Source: Amphiscolops sp. MND2022
Lineage: Eukaryota
Assembly (NCBI GenBank): GCA_964187785.1
Contig: OZ076415.1
Span: 28,458,001-28,522,000 of the forward strand
Length of the DNA stretch: 64,000 nucleotides
Direction of reading: 5' to 3'
Below, in pieces: positions 3,201 through 64,000 of the stretch (its first letter is position 1; every line of letters starts with the position of its first letter). A program made the position numbers and the translations under genes. A model generated the notes under the pieces. It saw nothing but the letters and a program-made list of their open reading frames with translations. It searched no databases and was not told the origin of the DNA.

Positions 3201-3433
3201 TTAAATCATTTTCAATAGTCAGTTAACCTCGCACATGAGGTTTGACAGTAAAAGAGGTGCAAGAGTCACCCAAAAGAACCGGTGTCAACTTGAGTTCGAC
3301 CATTTGAGTGTCAACAACTTTTTTGGAGTTATTTTTGTGTACACATCAAATTTGCGGGCTAGTTCAGAGGAAACCCAAGAATGACTACACGCTGAGTTGC
3401 ACAAACCAATACCCTCTCCAATTTTTCTGAAGG
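265..3433 (-). pseudogene. BEL/Pao pol (protease-RT-RNaseH-integrase) pseudogene
   Basis: ORF fragments 504-785, 2352-2576 and 2689-3072 carry Pao-type motifs; the frame ends VKLAPVLPSPE* near 265. Confidence 0.88.
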
Positions 3434-39056: not shown

Positions 39057-39650
39057 ATCAGTAGCTCCAGTTAACTCCTTATTAGGGATAAATTTCACTT
39101 TCATTCGGGCCAGTTTGAAAGACTCAAAGTTTTCTTTCAAAAAGTTAGATGCTGGGGCAGGGGACAAAAAATGTTTGTTTACAACTGTTACAGATGGAAT
39201 GATCCATTACAACTAAATTTTGAAACGTGGCATATTCGAAAGCTACTATTAAAAATATGTATTGCAATAAACTGTTCTCAAGCCAATGATCTAAATCATA
39301 CTAATCATTTTTACTCTCTAAGATGCTTGCTTCTTACTGAAGCATTTTTTTTCGATCACGCTAACATACACCTGTGCGAAATTCATTTTTGCGAATCAGA
39401 ACAAAATGGGAGTTGAGCTGAACAAATTTTAGAAAAAATACTCTTCAATATTGAAAAAGGAGATTTTTTTTTAAATTACGTGAAATGTTTCATTGAAAAC
39501 TCAATTGAGAGCAAATTACTTGCTAAAACAATATCATCCAGAAACGTGTGTGCAAAAAGAAAAAGTTCCGAAGTTTCTTTTCCTAGTTGGTTCTTGATTA
39601 TCATTATGCCCACAACAGAACTTTCGTCGACAAGTATATCGGAAAGGGCT

Positions 39651-41492
39651 ATGGCAACTTTCGTGTGTTTCATTCTTATATCTGTTATTTGTGGTGGCGC
39701 ATTCACATCAGTTGAAGATCAAAACCTTGAAGAAAAATCTGACCCTGGTGAAGACACTTCACATTTGAATTCGTTAGTTGAAGATCGAGAGCTCGAGCAA
39801 GATCATGACCATCGAGTTGACCCCGATCTTTCAGCTGCAACAGATGATGATCTGGAAGAAAAAAGACAATCAGATGGACATGGGCTTCCTTCGTTAAGAA
39901 GTTGTGGACAGAACGACGAAACTTGCAAAAGGGATACTGCGCAACGAGTCCCCTGTTCCCATTTGCCAGGTGGGCTCAGACGCCTAACCCTTGGTGTACA
40001 TATTGCCAACTTGACCTTGAGGCCCCTGGATTACATTGCACCCGATGGGTATGCCTTGCCGGTTATAAGGTTGAATTGTCGCAAGGACAGGACATGGACC
40101 AACCAACAGAATTCGGTAGCCTATTTAAAACCTGAAGAAGTCAGCAACATTCATAACATCAATGCAGGCAACTTACAAGCCTCAAGCGAAGTTTTTAAAT
40201 CGTCATGGGATGTGAAAGATTCCATTGAAGCGCACATTGAAGTAAGTGGAATCTACAAAAAGGTGGGAGGCTCTTTGGGTGCAACCTTTCAACGTATGTC
40301 CCAGGAAATCCGCCAGAACGAACGGAAAATCACAGACGTTTCAGCATTCACGGCAGCAATGGAAGTTCAATTCAGGGATTTTGGTTTGACTTTGGACGCG
40401 CATGCGCAGAAATATCTGGACAGATTACCCGATGACATCACGAAGGACCGCGAGGGGTACGCTAAGTTTGTGGATCTTTTTGGCACTCACCACTTCAGGG
40501 TCGGAAAACTTGGTGGCATTTTGAAAAGTACAACTACAACAGATATGAGTAAAGTGACAGACATTTCGGAATTCGATATATCTGCTGAAGCATCATCCAA
40601 TTTCGTAATAAAAATAATTACCGTAGGTTTGGCAGGAGGAATTGGATATGACAAAAGACAATTGACTTCAAATTTTTCGACTACTTCATCAACCAAAATC
40701 AGGTTCTACGGAGGAAATACAAACTTGTTAGAAAAAGATGGAATCAAGAAGTGGCAACCAACTGTCTACGACGAACCATGGGTCTATTGGGGAAGTTTCC
40801 GTGAAATTTATCACTTGTTAGACGAAAATGATAAAAAACGAGAAGCACTCAAGATAGCGGTGGAATCTCGTTTGAATGAAGACTTTAAAAAGCATCTCGT
40901 ACAGACATTCAACGAAGTGTTGACGGTATACCAGAAGCTTAGTATCAGTGTAACTGCTTTGACCAAACTGAAATTAGATTTAGACAAGGAAGTTAACAAG
41001 CAGTTTCCTCTATTCAGTGAACTCTCTAAAATTGAAAAAAAGTTGAGGGCCATTGTGAACCCCCCTAAATGGTGGAAACGAGTAAAGCTTTGCTTCGATG
41101 TAAGGGGTGAATATCCAACTTTCGTATCTCCTCATGTAGGGAACGAGAAAACTCTCTGCGCACAAACAGATTCATTCACCGAGAAATACTGGACCCAGGT
41201 GTACAGTTCAAGTTACGTATCTGAAATGAAATGGGGAATCATGACAAATGGTTACTACGATTCCTATTTCAATCGGGTCGAATGGTGTGTGCGTTATCTA
41301 CCAATTTATGGTTACTTTTGCGACGAAGATTTCTACTTGAAGTTTTTTGACGAAGAATGCGCACCCGTAAATACTTACACCCCACTTTTATTTTATGCAA
41401 TGCGAGCTGATAAAAACGGATGCAAGTTCGTTTTTCGTTCTCACTGTCGCAAAAGCTATTTACACTTTTCTAAAGAACAAGACATAGACTAG
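39651..41492 (+). CDS. Secreted MACPF-domain pore-forming protein, perivitellin-2 67-kDa subunit-like; single exon, ~613 aa
   Basis: Signal peptide MATFVCFILISVICGGAFTS; acidic pro-region ending EEKR; N-terminal CSHLPGGLRRLTLGVHIANL...DGYALPVIRLNC; MACPF signature FGTHHFRVGKLGG; Cys/aromatic C-terminal domain; no stops. Confidence 0.88.
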   Translation: MATFVCFILISVICGGAFTSVEDQNLEEKSDPGEDTSHLNSLVEDRELEQDHDHRVDPDLSAATDDDLEEKRQSDGHGLPSLRSCGQNDETCKRDTAQRVPCSHLPGGLRRLTLGVHIANLTLRPLDYIAPDGYALPVIRLNCRKDRTWTNQQNSVAYLKPEEVSNIHNINAGNLQASSEVFKSSWDVKDSIEAHIEVSGIYKKVGGSLGATFQRMSQEIRQNERKITDVSAFTAAMEVQFRDFGLTLDAHAQKYLDRLPDDITKDREGYAKFVDLFGTHHFRVGKLGGILKSTTTTDMSKVTDISEFDISAEASSNFVIKIITVGLAGGIGYDKRQLTSNFSTTSSTKIRFYGGNTNLLEKDGIKKWQPTVYDEPWVYWGSFREIYHLLDENDKKREALKIAVESRLNEDFKKHLVQTFNEVLTVYQKLSISVTALTKLKLDLDKEVNKQFPLFSELSKIEKKLRAIVNPPKWWKRVKLCFDVRGEYPTFVSPHVGNEKTLCAQTDSFTEKYWTQVYSSSYVSEMKWGIMTNGYYDSYFNRVEWCVRYLPIYGYFCDEDFYLKFFDEECAPVNTYTPLLFYAMRADKNGCKFVFRSHCRKSYLHFSKEQDID

Positions 41493-45000: not shown

Positions 45001-46749
45001 TAATGATCGTTTCACATTGGACACAGGTTGCAGACATGAGGTGACTTCACCTGTTTTTTGGTTCTCTGTCATTATATTGCAATTTTACGACGCCAATCGG
45101 GGAAGATTTGATTTTTCAAGAATTGACAGAAGTTGGTGTTCTCACCTACCAAAATGTGTTTTCAAGAATTGACAAACGTTGTGCACTTCAAAGAAAATGG
45201 CAGTGCCGCCAAAATGATTGTAGAAATCTCACACACTAATATTAGCAGTGCAAAAGTGAAATTTTCAAGAAATGAGAAAATTGATTTGTGGATTCTTCAC
45301 AATAATGACAATCTATGCTGCACTTGTAACAATATTGGTGTGAGGGTTCGTCGCATTTTGTCATTTCCTGTACTTTTTTCTCATTTCTTGAAAACTTTTC
45401 TGATTTCTTGAACACTTTTCTAAATTCTTGAACACATACCTGGATTCTTCAAACACTAATGATAAATAATTCTAATTTCTTTCTGGATTCTACAAAAAGT
45501 TAACTAAACTTTTTTAACAATAACTCTAAATAAAATCGACGCAGAATCGACAGACTGATACACACAGTGACTGATTGGAACAAGAATCAATGATGATTCT
45601 GTCCATAAGTGTTCTATTTGAATTCATTTCCTAAAAATTCTCTCTGTTCTTCAGATATCTCCAAACGACTCTTCACGAGCAAAGCAACGACTCCATGAGT
45701 GTATTAGCGACAGCTAGTTCGTTCTTTAAATGGCTGACCACGAGTGAATATGATCAACACGTAGACTTCAGACATAGTTTCACGTTCCAATGACAATTAT
45801 TTTTGTCTAGAATTGTGCTATTTGAAATCAAACATTTTATATCCAAAGTTGATTCGTTCATAGAATAAATTTTATTTTATTTCAATTTTTTTTAATTTAG
45901 ATTTTTGTCATTAGTTGTAAGACTCCCTGAGTGTATGACTCCATGAGTGTATGAACAACAGGTGAGCAATACATTTATGATTAAATTGTAACAACCCCGG
46001 GTGTGTATTCCTAAATAACTATAAATGATTCAGAAACAATGCAAATAAATCTAAGAGTGAACAGTTGCAGTTTTTGATTCTAAATCATTTGACTCTGACT
46101 GTGGAGAGCCAACTCGGAACGACTGGACTTTTTTTGTACTACTAGCATTTCTGAATTAGCAAAATAACGACTCCATGAGTGTAAAAACAGATGCTAAAGA
46201 ACATTTTGCCGGTGCATATCGAAAGAAAACACGGGTATTGACAAACACGTTAGTTCATGCGTGTCGTTGATGCTTAAAACTAATAACAATGGTTATTTAA
46301 CAAATTTAATAACAATGGACAGTTCATGGTTCATGTGTGTCATTGACAGTCAATATTTAAAAAAGAGTAGGTATCAAAATCAAATGAATAAGTTTCAATG
46401 TAAAATGTTTGCCCAGACATCTTCGTTATAAATTGTCCACTACTGAGTTTTGTCGAACGATGTCCCTGTACGTATTGAACCCTCCGCCAATCAATGTGAT
46501 ACAGCACTTGATGCACGACACGGCAAATGTTTTTTTTTTGATCAGAAACCGCATCGTTTTGATGTATTTGTAACTGTGACTGTATTTGCCAGCCTTTCGG
46601 TGCCACAACTTCCCCAACACTGAATCCCATGATTCATGCCACCCCTTTTCACCTGAGGGGATTGAGATATTGAATGTCAAATCTCTGTTATTCTCAATTC
46701 CGAGTGGAGAGTTCATCAGCCAAACACAAGATCCTTGCATATCCAGACC

Positions 46750-47153
46750 GCGACGATAGGGCCAGTCCCACAGCGTTCCTCACCGCTGCAAATAAAGAAC
46801 ACACCTTACTGATTGGATGTTCGACGCTGCCAACCAAGTTTGCATTGCTTTTGTGGCTCAAGGAGTTTCCTTCAAAGAACACAATTTTGCTCGAGGGCAT
46901 TGTGATGGAAATGTTCTCAAAATGTTCCGACACCATTGTCACGAGAACAAGTGGTTGCTCTTTTTTCCATACGAGCTTCAGGCTGCGAATGATGGATGGT
47001 TCCCCACAGTGATCCATCACTTTCCCACCTTCATGCCAAATCCCATTCACACGTGGGAAATGATGAGTGGAACTGGAACATCATTGAAAGTTGAAGATTT
47101 TGTCATCAAGTGGAAAACCAATGGTCAGACAAGACACAAGATTTACATCGAGG
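46750..47153 (+). CDS. Unassigned probable coding exon inside the giant element
   Basis: Open frame WMFDAANQVCIAFVAQG...KWKTNGQTRHKIYIE ending at a GAG|GTATG donor. No motif recognised. Confidence 0.3.
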
Positions 47154-47849
47154 TATGTCTTTAAACTCGACACTTTCAATTTCAACTTCTACATTAACAT
47201 CTTAACAACCTATTTCAAATTCTATAGAAACATTTTAACAACCCCAGGAATATCCAAATGTTCTAAGCAGCATTTCTGTACCGAAACCATAACGACTCCA
47301 GGAGCATGTAAATTCGTAGAATATTTCTAAACTAACACCCTAACTACTCCGGGAGCATACTTTTTTAAAATACATTCTTGTGTTAGGCACACATCATGAA
47401 ACTGATTTTGCTGAGTGGTGGCAAAATTTTACCATGGACAAACGCTTGAAGGGAAATCATAACTAAATTGATGGGCGTAGATCTGTTTCCCACTGGAAAC
47501 CAAGTGGTCAAACCAACAACGCTGAGACAAGGTGTACACAGAACAATTGGTACACCGACTGGAACCGATGAGTCACTTGAACCCGTGAACAATCATTCCA
47601 CAATGCAGACAAATCCACCAAAGCCCGAAAACAATCAGTCTACAACTTACGTAGTTCCCCGAGGGAAAAGAGTAATTAAGACTCCAAAAATCTCCAATCA
47701 CCTATTGGAAGTTCGTTTTGCGTCATGCAAAAAGAAACAACGTCGACTCTGAAGCTCTACTAGACGTCATCCTTCACTTTTCCAGAACAAAACAGCCAGA
47801 GTACTTAAAATCAGTCATTTAAAAAATCTTCCCTAACTTTCAGTCGCGA

Positions 47850-49680
47850 GAAACAATAATCTCCAATGTTGCGGTTTCCCTCAAGTCAGGCAAAGTAGAA
47901 GACTTGTTATTTCCTCAATCTTCGAATTTGAAAATCAATAAGTTAAGAAAAATCCAAAATCTCGTACCATCATACCGTGCCGTCCAAAGATACCAGAGTC
48001 AGATCATGGAAAACTTTATCTCGGTGTGTAAGCCTGAAGCCACCTTTTCTGGATTCCGTTGTGATCTGGTGTCATGTGTCAAACTTGCTGCGTGGATTTT
48101 TTTACAAGAGAGACGAAATATCTGAGCTCAATATAGGATGGTTGTGAAATTAGCGGTGTTGATCACACAAGGCTGTGTTTCAGAATTTTGAAAACTTCTC
48201 TCATAAAATACCAGCGCAATCACTAATTATAATATTTTGTTTCAGTGGTAAGTTGTAGTTATTTTTACTGATTCTGTAAATTCCAATTGCCACTTAGTAA
48301 GGTAATTTCATTACTGGGAAGAATCCACAAAAATAAACGAACTTTAAATTCGTGGACCACTACTTTCAGTTTGCACTCTCGCATGTTTAATTATTCAATT
48401 ATACATTCTTCACACCTTGTATAGTAATTAGTCTTTCGATTATACTGCTTAATTTACCGTGGTATACCAAATCTAAAACAAACAAAGGGTGTCAAATGTC
48501 AATCGAAACATCAAATGTAATTTTTGTTATGATATGTTAAGCATTCCGAGGCAAAGACAGCAGATTCGTACTGGAGCAAAATTTGGGACCAGAGATAGCT
48601 GGGAAACAAGGACGGGGTGGCTGTACAAGCAAACTAAAGAGTTGAGTACACAAGGGGCGGTGGTCACCTATACTGGTACAATCCTTTTCTGTACCGTCTC
48701 ATATTGGCTATAGACAGCGATGCAGCGAACCAATACCCATCAGACTTGGCGCTGTATGTGGGATCTGAAAAGTATCTTCCAACAGATGTGGATGATTATA
48801 CTGGTATGCGTCACAATCTGAAAGCTCCGTTCAGAAAAGAAACTACACAAAACTCCCTTGTGTACCTTGAGGATATAAGATGTGTCATGCCAGATGTAAC
48901 GCACATGATCACAAGGTGCGAAGAGAGTGATCTCCGCAAAGCTGCACAGAAAATAGTGAACAAAAAACCAGTGTACAAAGTGCCCCTGCAGCAGTTGGAA
49001 AAAAACTGTACTCGAAAAGCATTGAGAAAGCCGAAATTTCAGTTTGACTTGCACATGAAAGGATCTGAAGTGAAAAAAGGAATCGTTGGACCAGTATCGC
49101 TATCCGGGACATCAGCGCTAATAGCTATCGCTGAAGAAGAAGAATTTGAACAAAATGTTCCGAATCTTTTTGAAAATGTGTGGAAAACGCAATCCTTTTT
49201 GAGACGAGAGACAACACAAACAAAGAAAATGCGCGAGCTGTCAGCAATGCCTTTTCAGTTCTGAAATCCATGCACCCACCCATATCAAAATCAGACAAAT
49301 TCACGACAAACGACTATGTGAATCTCTTGCAGCATAGTTTGAATAAATGCACTATTATTTTGCGGGCATCCAAAAACGGTCTAAACACGGAACAGTTCAA
49401 GTTTTGGTCTGAGTCATATTATCAATCGTCGTTGCTTCTTTTTTCCGGGAAAGACGGACTCACCCCCTACAAAATGAAAATGTTGCTAATCCCACAGATG
49501 ATGGACGCAGGGTTTGTTCGGAGTCCATGGCATCACATGTGTGAAGCGATGGAGAAGTCGAACCATCATGCTCACAAGGACTTCCAAACCAAAACATTAA
49601 GGGCGGAGGAAAATTGTACAGCCATGATCCTTTATTCTAGGAAGGTTTCTTTTTCTACTGCCATTACCTCGACATAGATT
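47850..49680 (+). pseudogene. RAG1/Transib-like DDE transposase, frameshifted
   Basis: Ordered motifs LVPSYRAVQRYQ...SGFRCDL, DGCEISG (first Asp), LAIDSDA (second Asp candidate), CVMPDVTHMITRCE (D..H...R box), GLTPYKMK...CEAMEKSNH (Glu). Confidence 0.62.
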
Positions 49681-49789
49681 CAAAACACAAATAAAACCAG
49701 TGAGCGATACATTTGACAAGCTTCAGAAACAATTCCAGCAGATAACAACCTTATCCGAAATATGCAAAAATGTAGTCAAGCCTGTAATG

Positions 49790-50245
49790 ATAGAAGTAGG
49801 TGCCACTAGAGATTCAAGTAGGCTTCTGAGTGGACTTCGTTTTCACGTGGTTGGGCACTTTACTGGTTTAATTGGAAAAGTTGTGGTGGATATAATTACT
49901 CGTTTGGGGGCGGGGGGAAGGACTGAGTAAAGACAAAGCTCTTGGGCTATGAAAGCGCCATTCCTCAACCCCAAATTGTTTTGTAGCAGTGGAAAATGAC
50001 ACTGAATTGCTCATGGCAACGAAGAGTGAAAACAGCTCATGATCCGGATCAGACAGCGACACGTGTTCATCGAACACTCAACGAAAAATAGCTCCAGCAA
50101 AATAGTGAAAAAGGCAACAAATCAAGGATCAATCAGGGTATGCAAAGAATTTGCCGCCACTGATTTCAAGTTTTTGAGTATAGCATACATTCAAGATGTT
50201 AAAAAAAGGCTGTGTTTTGGACCCTTCCGAATACTTGTTTGTTAA
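49790..50245 (+). pseudogene. BRCT-like domain downstream of the transposase
   Basis: LLSGLRFHVVGHF...VVDIITRLGAGG, then (frameshifted) TPNCFVAV and FKFLSIAYIQD, matching BRCT N- and C-terminal patterns. Confidence 0.48.
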
Positions 50246-50987
50246 AGGTGCGATTGAGTGAGCATGTCTAAAATACCAACGTCCATTATTTGAGAGACAA
50301 AGAGATCTCGAAATATCAGACCTTGATTACAGATCATTGATTACTTCATTGAAAATTTCAAGAAAAAGAGCAAGAGAGGAAAGCAACCAGACGATAAAAT
50401 TGCTAATCATTTAAGCCAGTAGGCAAAAAAATGTCGGAGAAATTTGATTTGTTTGAATTTGTATGACAAGTAGTTTACTTCGATCAAAATAAAAATTTTT
50501 ACACTTATATCGTTTTCGAAAACCACAGCTTGCGTTTCAAAAGAGCCCTAGAAATGAGAAAGTAACTGTTAAACATGGTTTGCAGAATCAATATATCAAT
50601 ATTGAACCATCGCTAGTTATTGTTTAAATGTAGTGTACACTAATTTTAAACAAGCGTTGAAGCCAATTTTGTGGATTCTTCAGATTGCAATAGCTCAGCT
50701 TGCGCTAAAAATGCGCTCTAGAATTGAGAAACTAACTATTAGGCCTGGTTTAAAGAATCTATATATCAATGTTAAACCATTCCTAGTTATTATTTGAAGG
50801 TGGTATATTGCATTGTTTTTGGGCAATCGTTCGAGTTGGTTCAGCCGATTCTCAGCTGTAAATATAATAAATTACGTAACGACTCCGCGAGCAGATACAG
50901 TTCACAAAAACCATTCTAAACCAACTAGGTAAAAACTCCAGGATCTTATTATTTTTTAATAACCAATCGATTGGAAATTTTTGAATT

Positions 50988-51400
50988 CTAACTGAACATA
51001 ATTTCCGAATACTCCAATGGCAATGCCGCAATGTCAGTCTTAGCTACCATGACCAGGACGTCTTTGTTCTGTGCTATGTTTACCAGCACCGGTTTCACAT
51101 TTGCTTCCTTGGACGACTTGTGATTAATTAATCTCGCAAGGCACCGGTTGTTCGGATGTTCGTCGCAGATTTCCTTGGAAGAGTCAACATTGGTTGTGGT
51201 TACTGCTGCGTGACCCAAGCTTTTCACGTGGACGTCACAGATTGATGGCCATTGCTGTGACTTAATTCGTCTGCCAAGCGCCCTCTTGAAGTTATCTGTT
51301 TGTTCGTTATGAGCTGGCAGGAACAAGCCTTCGTGGCGAAGTGAAACTGTTGGAGTCTGTAGTCCTCCGGATTCAATCGATTTGTGACAATCTTGAACGT
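50988..51400 (-). pseudogene. SET domain (KMT5A/PR-Set7-like), internally deleted
   Basis: QQWPSICDVHVKSLGHAAVTT (N-terminal strand); VDSSKE...LARLINHK...ANVKP...LVMVAKTDIAA...EIMFS* (RxxNH and ELxFxY boxes, the Tyr position being TAG). Confidence 0.68.
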
Positions 51401-51581
51401 CTGTAGTTATTAGAACAACATGAAATTGTTAATCAAATGTTATTTTGTTCACTTCGCCCCAGCTATTATATTGCTGGTAAATTTTTTTTGCAGTGTAAAT
51501 GAATCCTTCTCATGCAATGTAGCTGTTGCTTTACTGAAGAAAAAAGTCATTGCGTCAAATGCTGCTGGTCAAAAAAGATAC

Positions 51582-53100
51582 CTTTTTCAGGTCTTCTTCA
51601 GTGTTCCATGTGTTCTTGGCGTAAAACTCTATGAGTCGCTGCCTGGTGGGTTCCGTGTGGTTGCGTTTGCTGCCACAAAACGCGATGATTTCTTTCGCTC
51701 GCAGCACTTGGCGGGCATATCGTTGCGCATTGAGGCGTCTGACAACGTAAGGACCCAGCTGTCGCTCAGTGATACTGTGTATTGCAGCCCAGGCCTTGTC
51801 AACACCTGCCCAGATCTCAGCGATGGCCTGCGTTTCCCTCATGAATCCGGCATTCCTGGATAAAGGCAGAGGAAGGGCTTTGTGGACACACTCCAGCAGT
51901 ATATCATCCACTGTTTCCCGGGCATCTTTTCCATCTTCAACAGAGTGAGAACGAAATTGTAAAGCAACACAACTGCGGAAAATTTGAATTGTGTGATGAT
52001 AATCTGACAAAAGAGTTGTTACATGAAAGAATGAAAATGATACTTCCAAAAAATCCCGCACTCGTTACTTGTAACAATAAGTTTTACAACTTCAATGCTC
52101 TCAATGCTCCTAATGGTTCAATTTTTACCTTGTCCATGAACTCCTCAGCAAAAGATCTGGAGTTGAAGTTCGCATTCCCTTTTGAAGTTACAAAGAAATG
52201 CTCCGTAGCAACCTCTTCGACGCCACTATCGTCCCGTTGAAATGCTCTCGTCACAATTCTTGGTGATTTCCGTTGGAAAGTTGGCCTCACATTGAGGTGA
52301 TACACCCGCATAGCATTCACCACCCATCGTTCAACACGGTGTTCCACTCGAATAGTGTTTCCTAAAACGAATTTAGTTCATAGTTCTAGATTTGGACATT
52401 TATTTTCTTGCCTTATGTTCAAATTTATATTCTCATATCAACAATTTATACGTCCGCATTTTATTTTGTTGAAAACGTGAAACCATATGCTAATAATTTG
52501 ATATCTACACAGAACATCCTACGTCGTTTTCAAGTTTTAGAAAAAGGGTCCAGTATATATACCCAAAGATGGTTCGAGAATCAATTCGCAAGGGTCATTC
52601 TCGCTCAAGTCATCAAGTTGTATTATAACTTGGGTGACGGCATGCACTGTCACACCCAAAATGCTTTTCGTCATCACTGTCACTGGCTCGGCATACATGT
52701 ACAGGTACGATATAATGCCGTGGAAGAGGGTTAATTGTTGCTGGTATGTCAGCGCTCTACATTTGTTGTACGTTTCTAACCCCCTCTAATGTATTTTTAG
52801 TATGGTGTCCGACTTTCGCTGACCACTGCAGTCGGGGCAATTTTGGTTGTGACTCTAAACACGTCTTAGCAGGAAAGTCGAAGCTGCGCTTTACGGAGGT
52901 GATTGTAGAAAGTGCACACGTTTCGTATTGAGTGTTTTTGACTTGATTGTCGGATGTGTACTACTTGATGTGCTGCTTTGAGTGAAATACGGAGGGTCCT
53001 TTCGCTTGTTGCCAATATTTGAGAAAAGTTGGTTGGACAAGGGATCGTAGTGCCCATATACGACTCGTGGAATGAGAAGTTTTTTTGATTTCGATGAATC
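51582..53100 (-). pseudogene. Degenerate Crypton-type tyrosine-recombinase region
   Basis: LTLFHGIISYLYMY...KSILGVTV (box-I-like); RWVVNAMRVYHLNVRP...EHFFVTSKG (Y...vRP...fF.t.kG pattern); C-terminal AQRYARQVLRAKEII...EPTRQRLIEFYAKNTW. Catalytic residues not confidently located. Confidence 0.42.
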
Positions 53101-54084
53101 GACGCCGGAGTGCTATGAAAATGAATTTCATTAGGGGTTTGTGGAGGTTGTAAAGGAGTTAGGACTGGACTGAGTATATTGCGTGAAGTCGCTGTTACAA
53201 ATTGAGATGTTTCTTAGAGGTTGTTCCGACATTATGAAGTTTTAGTTTACTCCGATATCAAAAGGGAAAACAAAAATTTTCAAAATTGAGCTGCTGGGAA
53301 CTGCAAGAGTAATCGGTCTAGAATTTTGAAGAATATTCTTAAATTGGTTGAACAGCTGGTTATTGCGAGAGTAATCGGTCTAGAAGATGGAAGAATTGAT
53401 TTTGAATAGTGTATTTATAGTTGTTAAATCAATTGGAAAAAAATCGAACGCATTTGTTGACGCATATTAAACTGCCCATGACGCTGCATTTATTGGAAGC
53501 GTTTAACTAATTTTTAAATTACAATCAGAGTTTGTCAAAAATTTACTCAAGTAACAACTGAGTGCAAAAGTAATCGATCGCAGTTAGTAGCTTTTAAAAA
53601 TTTGATGTTTAGATGATTATTTTAAAATAATCTATGACACCCCTGATTGTGTTAGATTTGGTACATCGGGTTGATTTCAAACTACACGGTGAACTACCCA
53701 ATAGAAATGAGGCACTAATTACTTATCATGGTGTGAAGAATCTATAATTGAATGATTAAACATGCGGTAGTGCAAATTGAAGGTAGTAGTACACGAAATC
53801 AAACTGAACACGTTCGTTTATTTTTGTGGATTGTTCACAACAATAGGACTGCTGTGAACCTACGTTTGTAAATTTTGTACAAAACTGGTTTGGTTTATGA
53901 ATATTTGAATTCTCGAATACAAAAATAATCTACAATTGCATCAACCTTCAATTGAAAAATGAGCTTATGGTTCCTAAACAAACGCTCCTGGAGTCATTAC
54001 AAAATAATGGAAGAGTCTTTTTTGCATCCAGAAAAATGAAATAATCGAACTCCACTAAAACGTATGAAAATGCCAGATATTTAC

Positions 54085-54510
54085 CTGACATCACGTATTC
54101 GGAAGGATCCAAAACACAGCACTTTTTCTCAACATCTTCAATAAATGTCGCCTTATGGTTTTGAAAAAGTATCAATCAAAAAAAATTATTTGATTAGAGA
54201 GGTTGTCAAAAATCAATCATCACTCAGAACAAAATATAAAAATGTATACAAAATAACGATCAGAGAAGCGAAAGATCGATTTCGTGTGAGTATTTATGTG
54301 TGCAACACAACGGCATAAAGGGGATGGTAGCGCAGTTGATATTTCACATGGGTATGTAATGAAGCTAGACGCGTTGTCTACCACCGGATCGATTCTCACA
54401 TAGACACTGTTGACTCTATACAGACCACTCTGTATTCCTCCATATCGATTTGGTAAACGACATCGTTCCACTTCACAGCGATCGGGGGGCATAATAGAAG
54501 ATCCAATCAA
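54085..54510 (-). pseudogene. BAH-like segments
   Basis: Short AG/GT-bounded exon ATFIEDVEKKCCVLDPSEYVMS resembles the BAH motif (i.gkC.Vld...Y); upstream SFITYPCEI resembles the BAH F..nE box. Confidence 0.4.
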
Positions 54511-54524
54511 CTGCGCTACTGCAT

Positions 54525-55085
54525 CCCTTTTTGATGTGAAAAGGATAAATCATTGTTGATCGTTATTTTTACAGCGATAGGAAGGCACTATTGAAAATCC
54601 ACTGCCTTCAGGGGTGTTCATTAAATAATTATGGGTAAGAATACTTGAAATGGATGAAATAAAAATTTATATTTCTGCAATCAAATGAACAGAAAAAATT
54701 TTTTCGAATCTGTAGACAAATTATTATTCTTGAGATAACTAAATCTAACTAAGAACGTTTAATTCAACCTATCGCCAGCCAATTAAATTCGAACATACAG
54801 AAATCTTGAGCTAATTTCCAGCTTGAGCTAATAATTCTTTTAACAAAAAAATAAAACTCTTTATTTTTCCACTATGAAAATAAAATAATTGGTTTTTAGG
54901 CAACAATATTAATCGAATAAAATATAAAACACCCCTGACTGAATCCCTTTTTGATGTGAAAAAAGATCAGTTGATCGTTGTTATCTTCCTTCACAGCGAT
55001 AGGAAGGCACTTTTGAAGATCCAATGCATCCCTTTCTGATGTGATGCATCCCGTTTCGTTGGTATTTTTCACAGCGATAGGAATG
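54525..55085. repeat. Dispersed short repeats ATCCCTTTTTGATGTGAAAA and CAGCGATAGGAA(GGCACT)
   Basis: Copies near 54523/54572, 54943/54995 and 55028/55073. Confidence 0.7.
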
Positions 55086-56269
55086 CGCAATTGAAGGTTC
55101 AATCCGCCAAATCCGTTTTTGATGAAAGCCGTAATGTCTATTTTCCATAACTAAAAAGAAATATAAACTATTAAATTATAAAATTATAAAACATCATTTA
55201 CTCATTATAAATGGAAACTTTCCCCACACACACACACTTTTTATAGAATAAGTGTGAACAAAGTTTGTATTCCAACTATAAACTGTCACTCTGGAAATAC
55301 CTGTAAAATTGATGAAATCTGGTCTGTAATCAAGTAGTTTTGTTATTATAGGTAATTGCAAAAACATCATCTTGAAAAGTGTGGGGAGGAGGAAAGTCCT
55401 AAATGGACATCACTGGATGAGAATAAAGAGAATAATATAAATCTGTATATTGGGTTAGGCGTCGAATTGCGCAGTGGAATCGGGGGACTAATTACTATAC
55501 ATGGTGGGAAGAATCTACAATTGGATAATAAAACATGCGAGAGTGTAAACTGAATGTATTGGTCCAAGAATTCAAACCAAATTTGTTCGTTTATTTTTGT
55601 GGATTCTTCACAACAATAGGACTGCTATGAACATACCTTTTATAACTTCATGCAAAACTGGTTTGCAATTTTGACTCATTTGAAAAAAAAAGACAATTCC
55701 TTTAGTAATCACGCTGTCTAAGCTCGTTTAAAAAATTTCAAGTGGTAACTGTATCTTGATTTTCTTGGACCATATGGTACTGATCGATCTCTTAGTTGAA
55801 CAATTTGTTCAACTAGGCAGGTATCTTATCAACACTATTGTTGATCATTGTTCTTTTAACAACCGCTACCACATTCCACCGCCAACAATTGACGGTTGGG
55901 AATTTTCATTAATATACTAATGAACATAACTAAGTTTGTTTCTTTTTATTTGGTACAGTTGAAGTTATGCGCTGATGGAGCAATCACAATGACGTCTCGG
56001 TACTTCATGAAATCAGACTGCAGACAAGGCCTGACTTCGAAAGAGCGGGTAGCAACCTATTTTTCTGCAAGGTTCCATTCTGAAGCAGTAACATGCAGTC
56101 GTAACATCTGGGAGCGATTGTCTACGGGAGGGGAACCATTGGATGACTTGGAAATTCGGGAGCATACAAATTGAAAGAAGGTTCTTTATTGCAGATTTTG
56201 TACAACGATTACTTTGAAGGTAAACGTTTTTTTGAATGCATAAGTACCATTTTATTAATAAACATCTAC

Positions 56270-56545
56270 CTCTCCGGTGGCTTCGGATCAGCTGCGGAGT
56301 GGCTGCAATCTCTCGAGTGACCAATGTGAGACTATCTACGGCCTCGCAGAGATCGTTTTCAGCATACGGTGGCTGGTTGCATGGGGGGATGGCTGGTTGG
56401 AAATTGGAACCGACCATGATCATCGGTTTTCGTTCCAGGACGGGGGCCAAGTTCGTCTTCTTAGGTTGATCAAGAAGCTTCCTCCTGGATAAAGTTTTTT
56501 GCTTGGCTTCTCGTCGAACACAGCCATGTTGAAGGCAGGAAACAC
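56270..56545 (-). pseudogene. ELM2-like exon
   Basis: KPMIMVGSNFQPAIPP matches the ELM2 opening I-x-VG-x-x-[YF]Q-A-x-IP; the exon is bounded by CAG| and |GT. Confidence 0.5.
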
Positions 56546-57224
56546 CTGTAACAAACACGTTTATCTTAACAGGTTTATTGGGGAGTATTTGGGGTCTAAA
56601 TACTATTGAGATACTGTTAGGATACATCTCTACCCCTCGTAAAATTATTCAATCTGGGAATTGCTCACAACAACAGAACAACGAGCATTTTTGCTAAAAT
56701 ACTTACTTCTGTAGTGAAAGCTTCTCCGTCCTTCATGTGTTCTGCCACTTTTCGGAAGAGGTGCCTGTACTCATCACCCAAGTAGTTGGGGCACAGCTTG
56801 CGGTAGTTGTACAGCAACACACTCCACACTGTCGTCAAACGGTGATATCTGGAATACATAAAAATTATACTCCAGGTAACAATTCACAAAAGAAAAATTG
56901 GTGGAGGGATGTTAGATGTTAGAAGCTTATGAGATCTGACAAATTGTTCCGGAGTCGTTACAAAACTTTGTTTGGGGGGATTGTTTCTAATTGGTCCCCA
57001 AAGATGCTTCCGGAGTCGTTACAAAATGTTGGGATGGATTGTGTCTTCAATAACATTTTGAATTTATTGCCTAATATGCTCCCGGAGTCGTTACAAAATA
57101 AAAAAGGGAGGTGTTTCTGCTTCTTTTGATGTCTACAAAGGGCTCCTTCACTTTCTCGTTTCAGCTATATAGAAAGTAAAGGAAGTATAGTGATGTTGTA
57201 TATTTACTATATAAAAAACGTTAC

Positions 57225-59087
57225 CGTGTATCTTCTTCAATGTCGAAGTTAGCATCAACAATTAGTCAACTGTGGCCAAAACTCAGAAAATTGGCACCGA
57301 GTATCACTGAGTCGCCCTGGGTCAGGACACAGTGAATCTACTTGGCCCTTTGCGTGGATCCTGTGACATCCCCTTCTAGCGTCTGTATTATTGTTCTAAA
57401 TATCACACATAATAAACTTAAATGGGAGTTTCGATAGAATTCAGTTGGGTGCTCATTTTTAGGATTACCCGAACAATGAACTTTTTATCTTGAAGAGATT
57501 TTCTTTTTTCTATACACTGAACGAACATTTTAGGAAATTGACGTGAAGTATGATGTTTATACTTACAAGCTGCGAGGATCTTCTCACTGTACTGCTGGAA
57601 GAGTTTCAAGTTCTTCTTTGTTGGCTCAACAAGTCAGAAGATTTTCTCACACAACAGTACCACGTAGAAAACTGACGTGCTTGCGTATTCAATGTGCCAC
57701 GGGGTGACAACATTTGTCGTTGAAAAGTAACAGGTAGTTCCAGGTGCTCTCCGTCAAGTACCCATCGCTCTGAGAAGCTGCCAGTTTTGACTCTACATAG
57801 CGGTCGATTGCCGCATTTTGTACCGCAGTAGGTGGTGAAAATATCTAAAAACGCGTGTACGTGAACTTTTTAAAATGCGAATTTTGCTTTATTATTTTTA
57901 GGAAGAAAATTTTGCAAAGACGATTCTGTATCGTTTACATATGGGAACTGGGCACCTATTAAATCTAACTTTTCAGTCACTTTCAAAGTTATTTAAAAAG
58001 TGGTTCTTCACTCTATTGGCTAACTACTTTCAATTTTATCTAAATATCTCATTACCGCATGTTGAAGGGTGGCATCTAGTACGTTCACAGGAAAGAGTCC
58101 CTCACGGGCTGCTTCTGGGCCGCAACGCTGTTCTGCCAGATAATCGTCTCTAGTCAGATTTCGTATCTGCAAATTCATTTTGTACTCTAGTTCAAATGAT
58201 TTTTTGTTGAATGTGAAAACGCAGTAGAATTGAGACAATAGTGACTAAACATGTTGTGAAGAATCCACCTTTGGATAATAAACCATTGGAAAATTAAACA
58301 GAACGTAGTAGTCCATGATTTCAAAACTACACGAAGTATACAATTTTGTGGGTTCTCCGCAAATATGTGATTTCAAAAATTAGGTTGTGGCTGCGTGAAC
58401 GCAGTAGAAATGGGACAATAATGATAAAACACGTTGCGAAGAATCTACCACTGGATAATAAAACATTGAAAGTTTAATTTGATGGTAGTGGTTCATGATT
58501 GTAAAGCTACACAAAACATACAGTTTTGTGAAATCTCCTCAAAAATGTGATTTCAACAATTTTGTTTTGGCTGCGTGAACGCAGTAGAATTGGGACAATA
58601 ATGACAAGACACGTTGTGAAGAATCTACCACTGGATAATAAACCATTAAAATATTAATTTGAAGGTAGTTGTCCATGATAAATCACAACGATACAAATAT
58701 AAAGTTTCGTGGACTTTTCACAGCAATAAATATACGCGTTTGTGTGCGTTCTCTTAAATCCAGGAAAGTTTTTCTGTAAATTACCAGCAAGTTATAGTTT
58801 AAAATCTTACCTCGTTCACTTTTGCCGACTTTGCAGTTATGGGGACTTCCGGGTTGGCAACATGCTGCAACAAATGTTCTGCTAGAGGCGGAAACTGAGT
58901 TGCCTTGTCCTCCGGATCATGGGGAATGACGAGGCCTTCCGCGTTGTCCCTGGCGCCTCTCCACAGGATGGGGAAACCATGGGCCAAATAACAGAACATT
59001 TTCTTCGTCTGATCTTCCACGGTCCCATTCCAAACAACGCACTTTGGAACGGTGCTCTGACGCGTCCCCCCGATGTGCTTGTAGTAC
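57225..59087 (-). pseudogene. JmjC histone-demethylase domain, KDM2/KDM7(PHF8)-type
   Basis: GFPILWRG...GLVIP; VNVLDATLQ; FSPPTAVQ; STTNVVTPWHIEYASTSVFYVVLLCEKIF*LVEPTKKNLKLFQQY; *IHCVLTQGDSVILGANFL. The H-x-E...H iron ligands are retained. One frameshift; stops at conserved Trp positions. Confidence 0.87.
58220..58720. repeat. Three ~180-bp tandem units containing GAAGAATC(C/T)AC, related to 53640-53900 and 55480-55670
   Basis: ACGCAGTAGAA...GTGAAGAATCCACC...GGATAATAAA at ~58219, ~58399 and ~58579; lies in an intron of the JmjC gene. Confidence 0.85.
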
Positions 59088-59351
59088 CTATGTACAAAAA
59101 ACAACTACTTGTTCAACTACAAGGTCTTTATTATCCTGGCTCGGAAAAAATATTTATTTTGAACTTCCTCTAGGCATGAAAAGTTTGTGTTTTGACATCT
59201 GTTGTATTCTGGTAAGGTCAGCTATAGTTTTAACATAATAAGTATTCAATTTTCCTTTCATTTCTTTGAAACTTGCATTAACATTATGCCTAAAAATACT
59301 TGAGTACTCTATGTATTCTGTAGCAAAGCTTTCAACACGAAGTTCCCTCAC

Positions 59352-59939
59352 CTGTAAGTGCCGTCCTTAGCCGACTTTCTGGGAAACCGCGAGAAGTTCA
59401 TGTCCTTGAACCTGTGATTCGGCACTCGCTCCAGATGCCGCAGCAGATTGCTCCGTGAAGAAAACTGCTGTTCACAACCCTCACAGCTTGTTGGCTTGAG
59501 CTTCCCTGTTACAGTCTCTAAAATAAAACAAAAACCAACTTCAAAACATGGGCGTTACGGGTCTATACCGCAAGCACAACTATAAAGTTATCATTAGTTT
59601 CTCAAAAGTGTAAAAGATACTTGTATTCATATATAACAAGACTGTTTCTGTAGATTGGTTTGTAATGACATCGTAACTTACTGTATTTTTTCAGAGCTGG
59701 GGAAAGACCTTGAGCCAATAATTTCGCCCTCTTGGCACAGCTCAGGGTCTGCTGATGACGTTTGAGGGCATCTTTTGTGCACACAGGTTGCAGACACAGG
59801 TTGCAAGTGAAGCTACCACTTCCGCTCTCCACCTCCGGCACCGGTTTGGGTCCTTGTCTTTTTCGTGTCTGTTGTAGTTAAACAACCTGGTCGACTCGTA
59901 AAAGCACTTCGGACACATCATCTTGGGTGTTGGCGGCAT
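59352..59939 (-). pseudogene. Three C2H2 zinc-finger motifs (exons 1-2)
   Basis: CPKCFYESTRLFNYNRH; CNLCLQPVCTKDALKRHQQ; CEGCEQQFSSRSNLLRHLERVPNH. One frameshift in exon 1. Confidence 0.8.
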
Positions 59940-61893
59940 TTTCTGGTTTTTAAGGAGAAATTTAGTTTTCTTTAAAAATTTGTTTCCTTGTGTTCTGTTT
60001 CCATATTTCTTTATATTTATTGCACACCTGGAGCCGTTACAATCACCTGGCTAAACGTTAACTTGTTGTACTCTATCCGTTGCGCTCTTGGAGTCGTTAC
60101 ATCTTACTAAACATTTGTATTTATTCCTGTTGTTATCATGCTCATGGAGTCGTTACGAGGGGTTCCCAAATAACATCAGAGCAAATAGCATACAATTAGT
60201 TTCAAATAACACAAAATTGAAATGGTTTTTACTAAACATGTTGTTTGAATTTTTTTTTCATTTTTATGTTATTTGACAGTAATTTTGTTTCTATGTTATT
60301 TGCACGTATGTTATTTGGTATGTAATCGTCGTTAAAATTTTCTAAACACTCGTTTCATATCTTACTTTCATCGCAGTCTTGGAGTCGTTACATCTAACCA
60401 AACAATTATTGTGCCCTATTTCTATGGTGCTCATGGAGCTGTTAACTCGGTGTACTCTATTCATTCCGTTAAATGTTTGGGACAGCTAAACTTAATTGGT
60501 ACCAAGAAAAACACTTGACTTACCTTAGTTGAATGTCGAATTAGTTTGATTGTTCAAATTGGAGTCTTCGCTTGCAGTCTTCGTGAAATTCTTGTATGCT
60601 TCGGGAAATTCTTGGAGTCTTCAGGAGATTGAGAAAACGTCTGATTGTCAGCAGCACTGGTTGTTAAATAACCTTATTGGATAAACCGCGGGATTTTGAA
60701 GATTGTTTACATGACGCACCAAATTCTGCGAGTCATGGTCACGTGACAAGAAGTTCTTTCAATCACCGAATCAAATTCGAGTAAAAATCATGAAAGTATT
60801 TGCTCATTTGAATGGCTTAATATTTCTTGGACAACCTGATACACACTCAATTTTTGTGAATTAATGTAGTCGATAAACCACGGGAAGTTACCCTCCCCCC
60901 CACAGACACACTTTTTAAGATGATGTTTAAGTTTAGGTTTAACTGCAACAAAAACTCATCGCTGTTAGCAGGGGGGTTAACATTTTCGCGCTTTTTGTAG
61001 GGGGGGGGGGTTTAAAAAAGATCCCCGACAGTCAATATAAGAAGAGGATGACAATATTTGATAATATCATTTGAACGCTCCTGGAGTCGTTACAAAACTA
61101 ATTTACTCATTTCAATGCGATTCTTTTCAAGCAATACTCAATACAATCTATATTCGATCCTGGAGTGACTCTTTTCAAACAATATTCGATACAATTTATT
61201 TGAACGCTCCTGAAGTCGCTGCAAAAATATCGTTTTCATTAAAATGATAAAAAGTTTTTCGAAGTTGACAATTGGAGGGAGGGGTCTTTAAAACATTTTC
61301 TTTGAAAGCTCCTGGAGTCGTTACAAAATTGGCTCTTTTCTGTTATTACCCCCCACCAGTTCAATTCCCCCCACTTAGGCGGTCAAGTGAAATTGTCATT
61401 GAATTAATATTAACAACCAATCAAATTGCTGTTTTTTATAACTCTAACTGCAACTGAAACTCATCGCTGATAGTGGTGGGGAAATAAAATTTCCGCGCTT
61501 ACTGTGGGGGAATTAACAGAAAAGATCCACAAAACTATTTGTTTCATTACAAGTAACAGGCATTTTTTTAAATTTGGCAAACAGAGAGGACGTATTTTTA
61601 AAAATTTTTGCTTGAGTGCTCTTGGAGTTGTTTCATTTTTATTTCTGCAGTTGATGTTTTGAAAACCTTTTCCTTGAAAACATTTTGTCGGGCACAAATA
61701 CTAGCTGGGATTACAAATCTCAGCGAAGTATGCTTTTGCCCAGTATAATGTAGTTTTAAGAGACTCTTCGTTTGGGGATCACATAGTGTCGCTCATAACA
61801 AGACCCACGTCGTGAACGTGGCCTTTAAAAGGTCTCAAAATCTAATTTACAAATTCTACTACAAAAACATACTAACTACATTTTTACAAAAAG

Positions 61894-62109
61894 TTAATTG
61901 TACAAAATACTAACTACAGGTAATCTACAGTAAGGACATCTTATAATAGCTGCATTTGCTAAACTATCCAAATAATGTTTTATACACTCTCTACAGGCTA
62001 AATGTAATCTATGATCTAGATGGAAACTTTGTATTTCCTCTGAGCTCAAGTTTTCAAAGCATATAAAACATTCTCTCTTCTTGGGAGCAACTGCCTTCTT
62101 CACCCTCAT
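61894..62109 (-). CDS. Small RING-finger protein (71 aa), putative E3 ligase
   Basis: ATG-initiated ORF: CFICFE...HLDHRLHLACRECI...IRCPYCR. Confidence 0.72.
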   Translation of the reverse strand: MRVKKAVAPKKRECFICFENLSSEEIQSFHLDHRLHLACRECIKHYLDSLANAAIIRCPYCRLPVVSILYN

Positions 62110-62284
62110 TTATAAGGGATAGAGTAAGTAATGATTGAGCGAAAAGATAGAAGAAGAATAACGATTTAGTTTTTTTAGAGAAAGCAGAGATTTGCAGAGT
62201 AAGTTGAGATCAGTGAGTGCAGAGAGGAATCTTAATTGCCAATAATTCCTTACAAGGGAATAATTCCTGACAATAGACTTTTTT

Positions 62285-63010
62285 AGAAGTTGGCAAACAA
62301 GGGGGGGAGAATAATTTTGAACATTCTTTTTAAACAGTTCTGGAGTTCTTACAAAATTATTTGTTTCATTACAATTAGAAATAGGAATTTTTCAAATTTG
62401 GCAAACAGGGGGGAGTATCTGTTTGAAACATTCTACCTAAACGCTCCTGGAGTCGTTACAAAACAATTTGTTTCATAACAATTGGAAATAAGAATTTTTT
62501 AAATTTGGAAAACAGGTGAGAGTATCTGTTTGAAACATTCTACCTAAACGCTCCTGGAGTCGTTACAAAATAATTTGTTTCATTACAACTAAAATTCGAG
62601 ATTTTTTAATTTGACAAACATGGGGGGTTTTAATTACTTGGACCAATCTACTTAATCAATTCTGGAGTCGTTACAAAATTATTTGTTTTATTACAAATAG
62701 AAATAGGGATTTTTTAATTTGACAATTATGGGAGGGGGGTAATTATTTAGAACATTCTACTTTAACAATTCTGGAGGCGTTACAAAAGTATTTGTTTCAT
62801 CACAATTAGAAATCTATTTTTTTAATCGACTAACAGGGGGAAGGGTTTGTAACTATTTTAAACATTCTACTTAAACGCTCCTGGAGTCGTTACAAAATTA
62901 TTTGATTCATTGCAAATAGAAATAGGGATTTTTTAATTTGACAAACAAGAAGGTGTATTTATTTGAAACATTCTAGTTTAACAATTCTGGAGGCGTTACA
63001 AAATCATTTG
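62285..63010. repeat. Subterminal tandem array, about seven ~108-bp units each with (CT)CCTGGAGTCGTTACAAAA
   Basis: Motif near 62340, 62444, 62552, 62661, 62770, 62878 and 62986. Confidence 0.9.
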
Positions 63011-63453
63011 TTTCATCACAATTACTAGGAAGTTTTTAGAATTCGGCAAACAGGGAATATATTGTGAAAACCATTCAACATATTCATCAAAATTATTCAT
63101 ATACAAATGAAAGAATCCACAAATTTTATTTAATGGTATTTCAGTGAATTCATACGAAACGAAGAATCCACAAAAACTTGGTACCTCCATACAGTGACCT
63201 AATTAGCGAAGAATCCATGTCAACTAATAATTGCTTAGGGAAGAATCCACACAATTTCAAGATTCGAGAGAAACGAGAGAAATTTTCTTTTGGCGATTCT
63301 TCGCAGGTTACACACGGTATTAGTGCAAGAAACCAGAAAATGTTTCACTCCACTTTTTAATTCTTGAAACGCATGTGTTATAATGCCGCTGAAGAATCCA
63401 CATAAGACTACAACAGGTTTGTTGCAGTCACTGTTTTTCCCCGATTGACATCG

Positions 63454-64000
63454 TAATGAACTTGGTCCTTCACCAATGCTCTGCACAACAGATGCCTTCC
63501 TCCACAGCCGTCTTTTTTGGGTTGCGTCTTGAGGCAGTTGTACAATGAAGCCATAGAAACAAAAAAAATTCCCGGCAACAGTTTTTGCTCGTTCAGTTGG
63601 AGTCTTCTTTTTGAGCACTTGTCACTGCCACAACAGATGTTTGTCTTTGAAGACTACACAACTGACCTGGGGTTTCAAGGTTGACACCTTTGTGCACCTG
63701 GTGTTTTTGCTGGAAGTTGTTGCAACGAACACTTTAGGATTGGTTTTGGTATTCGTTACGTTTTCGTTTGGAGTTTCATTAACTTTCGGTTTTCCAGAAA
63801 GAACTTCATGGAGAACCTCTCGTGAGCTTCGGGTGTGTCCTTCAGCCAGCCGTTGAAGTCAATCACAGTCGGTTGGTTCAAATTGCGCTTCACTGTATGC
63901 ATCGATCAAGATTCGTCCGTGTTTTATGGAAGCTTTTGGACAGCTTGACTAAGCAGTGAAGCACTCAAAACATCTTGAACGTAGTTCAGATATCAAAAAA
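63454..64000 (-). mobile_element. BEL/Pao element 2, 5' part (gag zinc-knuckle region); continues beyond the window
   Basis: KKTPTERAKTVAGNFFCF and SLYNCLKTQPKKDGCGGRH are homologous to KEAPTERAKVVIENKFCFSCFNGQHSFRNCP of element 1. Confidence 0.8.

Follow-up and report, generated by a model that had tools for sequence, protein, structure and literature searches.

Ends, insertion site and copies of the element

We describe here a DNA transposon from Amphiscolops sp. MND2022, located in a window of 64,000 nt on contig OZ076415.1; the window is the whole stretch of DNA analysed, and coordinates refer to it unless another contig is named. From its ends and its alignment to related copies, the transposon copy in the window (W) appears to occupy positions 45083–63458, corresponding to an element of 18,376 bp with 22-bp inverted ends of consensus CATTACGACGCCAATCGGGGAA. 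Besides a transposase gene on the plus strand, the element carries on the minus strand what homology identifies as a KMT5A-like SET gene, a PHF8/KDM7-like JmjC gene with C2H2 zinc fingers, a left-end gene and, in the sublineage of W, a RING-finger open reading frame (ORF). W is very likely a dead copy of a cut-and-paste family whose transposase has the RAG1/Transib fold and whose members carry histone methyltransferase and demethylase genes of their own.

Copies for comparison were retrieved from the ENA assembly ERZ25074608 through the closest transposase matches, and the loci were then joined. Copy C (ctg182462, 21.3 kb) and copy D (ctg183218, 20,597 bp) have both ends perfect, copy B (ctg177417) is cut on its left side by the contig end and offers the right end only, and a further locus, L022 (ctg185920), supplies a fifth left end. 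All four have their ends and gene order in common with W, the flanks of all copies being mutually unrelated. W and D align as a single collinear chain from 45085 to 63458 with 82–95% identity, and the full arrangement is also collinear among W, B, C and D. In copy D the inverted repeats are perfect, both transposase exons read without interruption, and the exons for SET, JmjC and the zinc fingers are unbroken. The preliminary description of this locus, drawn from the window alone, had proposed a large cargo-carrying transposon family, and the common ends and gene order in unrelated surroundings support it: W belongs, by all these comparisons, to a real multi-copy family of DNA transposons. In L022 the left end is present twice together with 12 bp of flank, at a distance of 4,101 bp (reversed coordinates 4009 and 8110), owing to a tandem segmental duplication or else to an artefact of assembly.

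The two 17-bp imperfect inverted repeats from which the element was initially recognised, CGACGCCAATCGGGGAA at 45088–45104 (plus strand) and CGATGTCAATCGGGGAA at 63437–63453 (minus strand), were found where they had been claimed, with 15 of 17 positions identical. A degenerate search allowing two mismatches returned these two sites only in the 64 kb, against 0.02 expected by chance. The boundaries given with them did not hold: the ends, said to be defined to the base at 45088 and 63453, appear to lie 5 bp further out on each side. The five bases outside CGAC read CATTA at eight of the nine ends available in five copies, the exception being the left end of W, and the dinucleotide outside CATTA/TAATG is equal on both sides in all three complete copies (AA/AA in W, AA/AA in C and GG/GG in D; chance about 3.7e-4). 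Since the outer dinucleotides match and CATTA recurs at the ends, we consider AA as the duplication and TA as part of the inverted repeat. The left repeat would then span 45083–45104 on the plus strand (TTTTACGACGCCAATCGGGGAA, with a consensus starting in CATTA), in line with alignments to C and D that both begin at 45085, and the right repeat 63437–63458 on the minus strand (CATTACGATGTCAATCGGGGAA in minus-strand reading), where the alignment to D ends exactly at 63458. The duplicated AA, a strandless feature, stands at 45081–45082 and, as the comparison of outer dinucleotides indicates, at 63459–63460. The TA duplication and 5'-CGA ends described previously are therefore replaced by CATTA...TAATG ends within matching dinucleotides, and the other loci, which had been put forward as a check on the duplication, show AA/AA in C and GG/GG in D instead of TA. 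With these ends and a 2-bp duplication the supposed oddity of the element is gone, and the termini point to the group of CACTA, Mirage, Chapaev and Transib.

The element is inserted in a BEL/Pao-like retroelement. Its flanks are collinear with a paralogous retroelement at approximately 2990–3909 of the window, at 64–73% identity, and excision of the insert leaves a spacing of about 255 bp, compared with 273 bp in the paralogue; collinearity and consistent spacing together indicate that the insertion is real. This part of the initial proposal stands, while the BEL/Pao label itself has been checked weakly, through a DUF5641 match at E = 1.3e-3. The continuous BEL frame that excision was said to restore contains a stop at the junction and proves little, as both BEL copies are frame-broken and an empty site cannot be fixed at base level from their reading frame. 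Once 45083–63458 and one AA are taken out, the sequence aligns locally to the BEL paralogue without gaps and across the junction.

The same alignment bears on the earlier model of the ends, in which a Transib/RAG-type element with 17-bp CGACG... ends would duplicate TA at a preferred palindromic target, CAT-TA-ATG, and leave empty sites that keep CATTAATG. It is true that TA adjoins CGAC at nine of nine ends, and apparent TA duplications have been described in ESTA (PMC12730594) and in Oriex (bioRxiv 10.64898/2026.08.26.747230). However, such a model requires a near-invariant 8-bp palindromic target, and a palindromic target predicts complementary flanks, whereas those of the three complete copies are identical (3/3, with the chance probability given above). 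Moreover, the reconstruction that it implies yields an alignment to the BEL paralogue that halts before the junction, the very point through which the 22-bp model passes. We therefore regard the TA model as improbable and retain the 22-bp ends.

Just upstream of the BEL-like element, in a stretch that is otherwise repeat-rich, the plus strand contains at 39480–41492 an uninterrupted, intronless ORF of 670 residues with a Pfam MACPF (MAC/perforin) domain (E = 1.1e-19).

Transposase and cargo genes

Single exons of W returned nearly nothing from Pfam and the PDB, since this copy is too decayed, and it was through its relatives that progress was made. With its longest transposase ORF as query, HMMER retrieved 90 matches among 1.84 billion representative proteins. 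Along the plus strand of W, a transposase pseudogene could be followed from exon 1 (47400–48247, start approximate), collinear with homologues P0020, P0025 and P0013, through a conserved phase-1 intron of GTAAGT...AG form (48248–48541), to exon 2 (48542–50430, end approximate), which matches the 90 homologues and contains the catalytic core and a BRCT remnant at about 49750–50210. The same interruption is found in B, C and D, and removal of the intron from W restores the FSAFRGKD motif seen in homologues. Although collinear with full-length homologues, the W transposase is split over many frame pieces. In copy D, two ORFs of 306 and 628 amino acids are separated by the GTAAGT...AG intron, and each aligns to P0020 in one piece.

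The fold of the family was approached with an AlphaFold model of P0020, built on a 25-sequence alignment, with a mean predicted local distance difference test score (pLDDT) of 76 and above 90 in the core. In a Foldseek search of the PDB, the best 45 matches were all RAG1, HzTransib or BbRAGL. VIA-align superposed residues 290–797 of the model on residues 479–1006 of mouse RAG1 with Z 19.1 (some 380–400 residues, root-mean-square deviation 3.6 Å); HzTransib (Z 17.5) and BbRAGL (Z 16.9) followed, and the next family, represented by the P element transposase, scored Z 11.3. Residues 835–995 of the model matched the BRCT domains of 53BP1, BRCA1 and XRCC1 at Z of about 11; Pfam detects BRCT (PF00533) above its cutoff in homologue P0042, with 22.7 bits, and the remnant of this domain can still be aligned in W. 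The predicted structure thus indicates that the transposase family has a RAG1/Transib core fold followed by a C-terminal BRCT domain. At the level of sequence, the sole hint of RAG1 was a RAG1_ZnH2 lead at rank 37 in the protein atlas. In the AlphaFold database, the clusters nearest to the P0020 model are uncharacterised proteins. Two blocks, RCVCPDxTH and PWxHMCExxEKSNHH, are invariant among the transposase homologues. Motif parallels with mouse RAG1 were inconsistent in their order and were dropped.

To the left of the transposase gene lies the remnant of the conserved left-end gene (46343–47161, minus strand). ORFs homologous to it occur in C and D, about 1.25 kb of the D sequence being missing from W, and long ENA contigs contain homologues of it in no fewer than 25 protein clusters; a Pfam search gave no match.

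The cargo block proper occupies the minus strand to the right of the transposase, and SET is its last exon (50961–51428). The W piece is detected by the Pfam SET profile at E = 0.011, whereas the intact exon of copy C covers the full profile at E = 9.4e-12, has KMT5A/SETD8 as its nearest PDB match (E = 1.5e-9) and shows complete NH and ELxFDY motifs, which identifies the exon as KMT5A/SETD8-like. Three conserved exons precede it at 51579–53232, namely E3 (51579–51929), E2 (52159–52368) and E1 (52561–53232), all of them kept in B, C, D and L021, a locus from a different sample whose transposase is 41% identical. Further upstream, the conserved exons at 56160–56850 open with a weak ELM2-like start, IMVGSNFQPAIP, reaching E = 0.004–0.008 in W, C and D, with 17.5–18.6 bits against a Pfam cutoff of 21.7 and coverage of the first 25–27 of 53 positions. 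The JmjC exons (57221–57844) owe their identity to those of C and D, where two exons contain the Fe-binding HxD...H as WHIDF and WIHCV. At consecutive positions, those of C match PHF8 (E = 1.5e-8), KDM2A (1.7e-7), KDM7 (about 2e-7) and, from a nematode, a homologue of KDM7 (1.5e-5), and in D both JmjC halves are detected by Pfam, so that the exons can be considered PHF8/KDM2/KDM7-like. The exon at 58793–59104, between JmjC and the zinc fingers, shares 64–70% amino acid identity with C and D and gave no Pfam match. The C2H2 zinc-finger exons (59345–60050) exceed the Pfam zf-C2H2 cutoff in C and D, with 27–30 bits; in W the corresponding piece is weak in Pfam, and a further finger can be read at 59345–59524.

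At 60757–62701, also on the minus strand, W contains a segment of 1.9 kb with the RING-finger ORF (61897–62209), whose zf-C3HC4 match is marginal at 21.3 bits against a cutoff of 21. The ORF is thus present as first described, in the W/B sublineage only: B has the segment, D lacks it, and C does not have it at that position. Two occurrences of the family motif described below, at 61083 and 61314, fall inside the segment, and because it contains this motif it looks like an integrated module and not a foreign insertion.

Regarding the architecture proposed at the outset, a single ZnF-JmjC-ELM2-BAH-YR-SET gene, the C2H2, JmjC and SET parts are recovered, ELM2 is weak, and neither the BAH and tyrosine recombinase (YR) parts nor the union of all of them in one gene found support. 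Among the ORFs of W, C and D, not one had a Pfam BAH match. The region E1–E3, taken as the recombinase, gave no integrase match by Pfam, the protein atlas, the PDB profile, Foldseek or VIA-align; the AlphaFold model for the fold comparisons, of E2–E3, had a pLDDT of 53, and the searches with it returned helical hairpins only. A word-based search for homologues of the L021 ORF gave no match, and neither this ORF nor the E3 exon led to anything usable in the atlas. In addition, the putative HxxR does not keep its histidine: QHYSR in L021 corresponds to QRYAR in W and C. The recombinase claim is accordingly unsupported rather than refuted.

Comparison of C with D gives roughly estimated ratios of nonsynonymous to synonymous substitution rates (dN/dS) of 0.09–0.20 over SET, E1–E3, JmjC, the exon 58793–59104 and the fingers (0.11–0.20 for E1–E3; 0.12 for the exon 58793–59104), and of 0.11–0.16 for the transposase. 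A tail-to-tail E2–E3–SET gene is also present in L021, and a SET ORF stands adjacent to a transposase that is 31% identical. The dN/dS ratios indicate that the cargo genes were under purifying selection while the lineages diverged.

A composite origin has to be considered here, in which a SET/JmjC unit with a Crypton-like tyrosine recombinase of its own became nested in, or was recently captured by, a smaller RAG1-like transposon, so that two chemistries would coexist in the element. The synonymous divergence between C and D, higher in the cargo than in the transposase, would allow an exchange of modules; by eye, E2–E3 show an R...H/RxxR...Y-like spacing, and the secondary structure predicted for them does not conflict with a recombinase. 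On the other hand, none of the Pfam, atlas, PDB-profile and fold searches (these last with the low-pLDDT model) gave a recombinase signal, the HxxR histidine varies, and the cargo is dissimilar to the Crypton-like units elsewhere in the window. The collinearity of W, B, C and D, the family motif running through the cargo and the tail-to-tail linkage at 41% transposase identity are likewise at odds with a late assembly of two units, and we find a composite element hard to credit. That the cargo consists of host gene fragments captured by chance and useless to the element is the least credible reading, for although every cargo gene is broken in W and RING is limited to one sublineage, dN/dS across the cargo equals that of the transposase between diverged copies, C and D keep the JmjC HxD...H and the SET motifs, and the SET linkage extends to transposases of 31–41% identity. 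We thus favour a transposon family for which these genes are cargo of its own.

Decay of the window copy and its internal repeats

Relative to D, the W transposase has accumulated 14 frameshifting indels and 8 in-frame stops, distributed as five frameshifts and four stops in exon 1 and nine frameshifts and four stops in exon 2; an 11-nt deletion near 48136 affects the DLWGDG motif in exon 1. The cargo is damaged as well, SET having lost 42 residues to a 126-nt deletion and, its C-terminus being broken, the C-terminal motif as well, JmjC containing stops and a frameshift, and E1 four frameshifts. At 48190, 48677, 49595 and 50098, single-base deletions private to W have each cost a CpG kept in B and C its G (or C), which could result from mutation at methylated CpG or from base-calling error at modified sites. 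Single-base assembly error is the less likely cause of the frameshifts, as only some of them fall in homopolymers, several take the G from a CpG, and eight stops arise by substitution alongside large deletions. Real decay is the better reading of the frameshifts, base-calling error at methylated CpG still being possible for a few, and W is a fossil, no longer a working copy.

The oriented motif arrays noted in the preliminary description were recovered. With one mismatch allowed, TAACGACTCC occurs 21 times in the window (2.7 expected), always inside the element, on the plus strand at 45685–50886 and on the minus strand at 53990–62998. Counts inside and outside the element were 21/0 in W, 25/0 in C, 10/0 in B and 16/0 in D. 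The dispersed arrays, of a near-palindromic motif of about 20 bp (TTTTGTAACGACTCCAGGAGC), extend over both strands from 45685 to 62998 and include a 107-bp tandem array at 62302–63024. In W and D, the transposase, zinc-finger and ELM2-like exons are preceded by motif clusters at a distance of 30–200 bp, an arrangement that would also fit a shared promoter element.

Other repeats were observed within the element. One of about 150 bp lies in the transposase intron (48310–48461) and recurs twice, inverted, in the cargo region (53685–53844 and 55465–55617), and related sequence (58221–58646) forms a 180-bp tandem array at 58218–58679. Copy C has related repeats between transposase and SET, in opposite orientation.

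Relationships of the family and possible role of the cargo

Judged from the modelled fold, the family would sit in the wider group formed by RAG1, Transib and the CACTA-Mirage-Chapaev elements, and not in Transib itself; the earlier assignment to a RAG1/Transib-like transposase with BRCT therefore holds for the family, in which fold and BRCT are recovered, while the gene is broken in W and seems not to be that of Transib proper. The CA...TG ends and the 2-bp duplication would also fit better in the CACTA-Mirage-Chapaev-Transib (CMCT) group than in Transib proper. Members of the CMCT group have CA...TG ends and duplications of 2–5 bp (PMC12730594), and the element resembles them in its ends (CATTA versus CACTA), 2-bp duplication, internal motifs, several genes and a fold nearest to RAG1/Transib, Mirage being the closest within the group in duplication length. 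Unlike them, it shows no Pfam CACTA or RAG1 sequence match, has a BRCT tail and chromatin-enzyme cargo, and bears motif arrays that span the whole element and not just the vicinity of the ends. With Transib and RAG1 it has in common the core fold over about 400 residues (Z 17–19, RAG1 479–1006), but identity is about 10%, without a match at the level of hidden Markov models. From Transib it also differs in its duplication (2 bp versus 5 bp), in its ends (CATTACG versus a heptamer CACAGTG resembling the recombination signal sequence, with agreement in the first two bases only), in having no RAG2-like gene and in a length of 18–21 kb against a few kb. Duplication length is known to vary among Transib relatives, with 3-bp duplications and the apparent TA of elements such as Oriex (bioRxiv 10.64898/2026.08.26.747230).

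Chromatin domains are often fused to, or captured by, transposons (bioRxiv 10.1101/2021.11.30.470311). The fungal transposons that carry TET/JBP genes include ESTA of rust fungi, a RAG1-like lineage with apparent TA duplications (PMC12730594). ESTA is comparable to the present element in its remote RAG1-like transposase, in the apparent TA beside its ends and in an epigenetic enzyme as cargo, and is set apart, as far as its description goes, by a fungal host and by a TET/JBP dioxygenase as cargo, whereas TA lies here within the inverted repeat. According to Repbase Reports as cited in PMC12730594, SET genes occur in HarbingerS and MuDR families of the oomycete Phytophthora, and the red alga Chondrus crispus is credited, in work cited in PMC6431247, with En/Spm elements of 16–20 kb containing 4–5 ORFs. 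To judge from these citations, such elements are similar in carrying a histone methyltransferase or in being enlarged to 16–20 kb with 4–5 ORFs, but they belong to other superfamilies or kingdoms, and the combination of SET, JmjC, fingers and a BRCT-bearing transposase was not found in the literature searched. A parallel for the motif arrays is offered by the VANDAL (MuDR) elements of Arabidopsis, whose anti-silencing protein VANC is cited as sequence-specific for motifs of the element itself (PMC12730594). As so cited, a factor encoded by the element and acting on its own motifs serves as a working model for the arrays described here, though VANC is a non-enzymatic protein from another superfamily and the link between fingers and motifs is in our case hypothetical. 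In full-text literature searches, no element of an animal with such genes came up, and the family as a whole is apparently undescribed, as a variant of a known theme.

Several points weigh against the picture of a RAG1/Transib-fold family with chromatin-modifying cargo. The left end of W reads TTTTA and not CATTA, and the 22-bp model requires two substitutions there; no empty site, transcript or transposition event has been seen. A profile of 25 homologues, whose PDB matches stayed at E > 0.4, gave no RAG1/Transib match in the PDB at E <= 10, and no Pfam RAG1 family was detected in 10 long homologues. Kinship with RAG1/Transib is read from the fold predicted for a homologue of about 40% identity. 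As structures of CACTA, Mirage and Chapaev are absent from the PDB, we speak of the wider group and not of Transib. The function of the cargo is likewise deduced from its nearest solved homologues only. Synonymous divergence (dS) between C and D is saturated in the cargo, at 1.1–1.8 compared with 0.6–0.8 in the transposase, and with values both saturated and unequal the dN/dS ratios are only approximate, and each module may have had a history of its own; the approximately twofold higher dS of the cargo hints that transposase and cargo modules were exchanged between lineages. Finally, a scan of JGI metagenomes yielded 16 short loci with more distant transposases and no detectable cargo, their neighbours including PLAC8 and an LTR integrase, a result that is uninformative.

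If the family works as its relatives do, the transposase would bind the ends, then excise and reinsert the element by a DDE reaction, with excision probably proceeding via hairpin intermediates as in RAG and Transib, and with active sites spaced for a 2-bp stagger. The cargo proteins would act on chromatin to the benefit of the element. One option is that the zinc fingers read the motif arrays, guide the cargo to the element and counter silencing; alternatively, methylation of H4K20 might aid repair where excision has left double-strand breaks, the BRCT domain serving as a link to the repair machinery. KMT5A and PHF8/KDM7, the nearest solved relatives of the two cargo enzymes, act on the same mark, H4K20me1. 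We can only tentatively envisage a self-addressed writer and eraser, in which C2H2 fingers bound to motifs found only in the element would bring in the KMT5A-like writer and the PHF8/KDM7-like eraser, so that the element either escapes silencing or recruits end-joining of the 53BP1 type, with help from BRCT, at its excision breaks; this proposal is speculative, and its chances are low.

W is of value as a dated insertion with both junctions, while the intact genes of copy D, together with the 22-bp ends and the internal motif, would provide a system in which to study the effects of transposons on chromatin or on break repair. If our reading is correct, some lineages of RAG1-fold transposases in animals would combine CACTA-like ends with a 2-bp duplication, in addition to other recent signs that the RAG/Transib core is conserved while the rules for ends and targets around it vary. 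Likewise, the range of transposons that carry epigenetic enzymes, known with TET/JBP from fungi and with SET from oomycetes, would be extended to an animal, in this case with both a writer and an eraser under selection.

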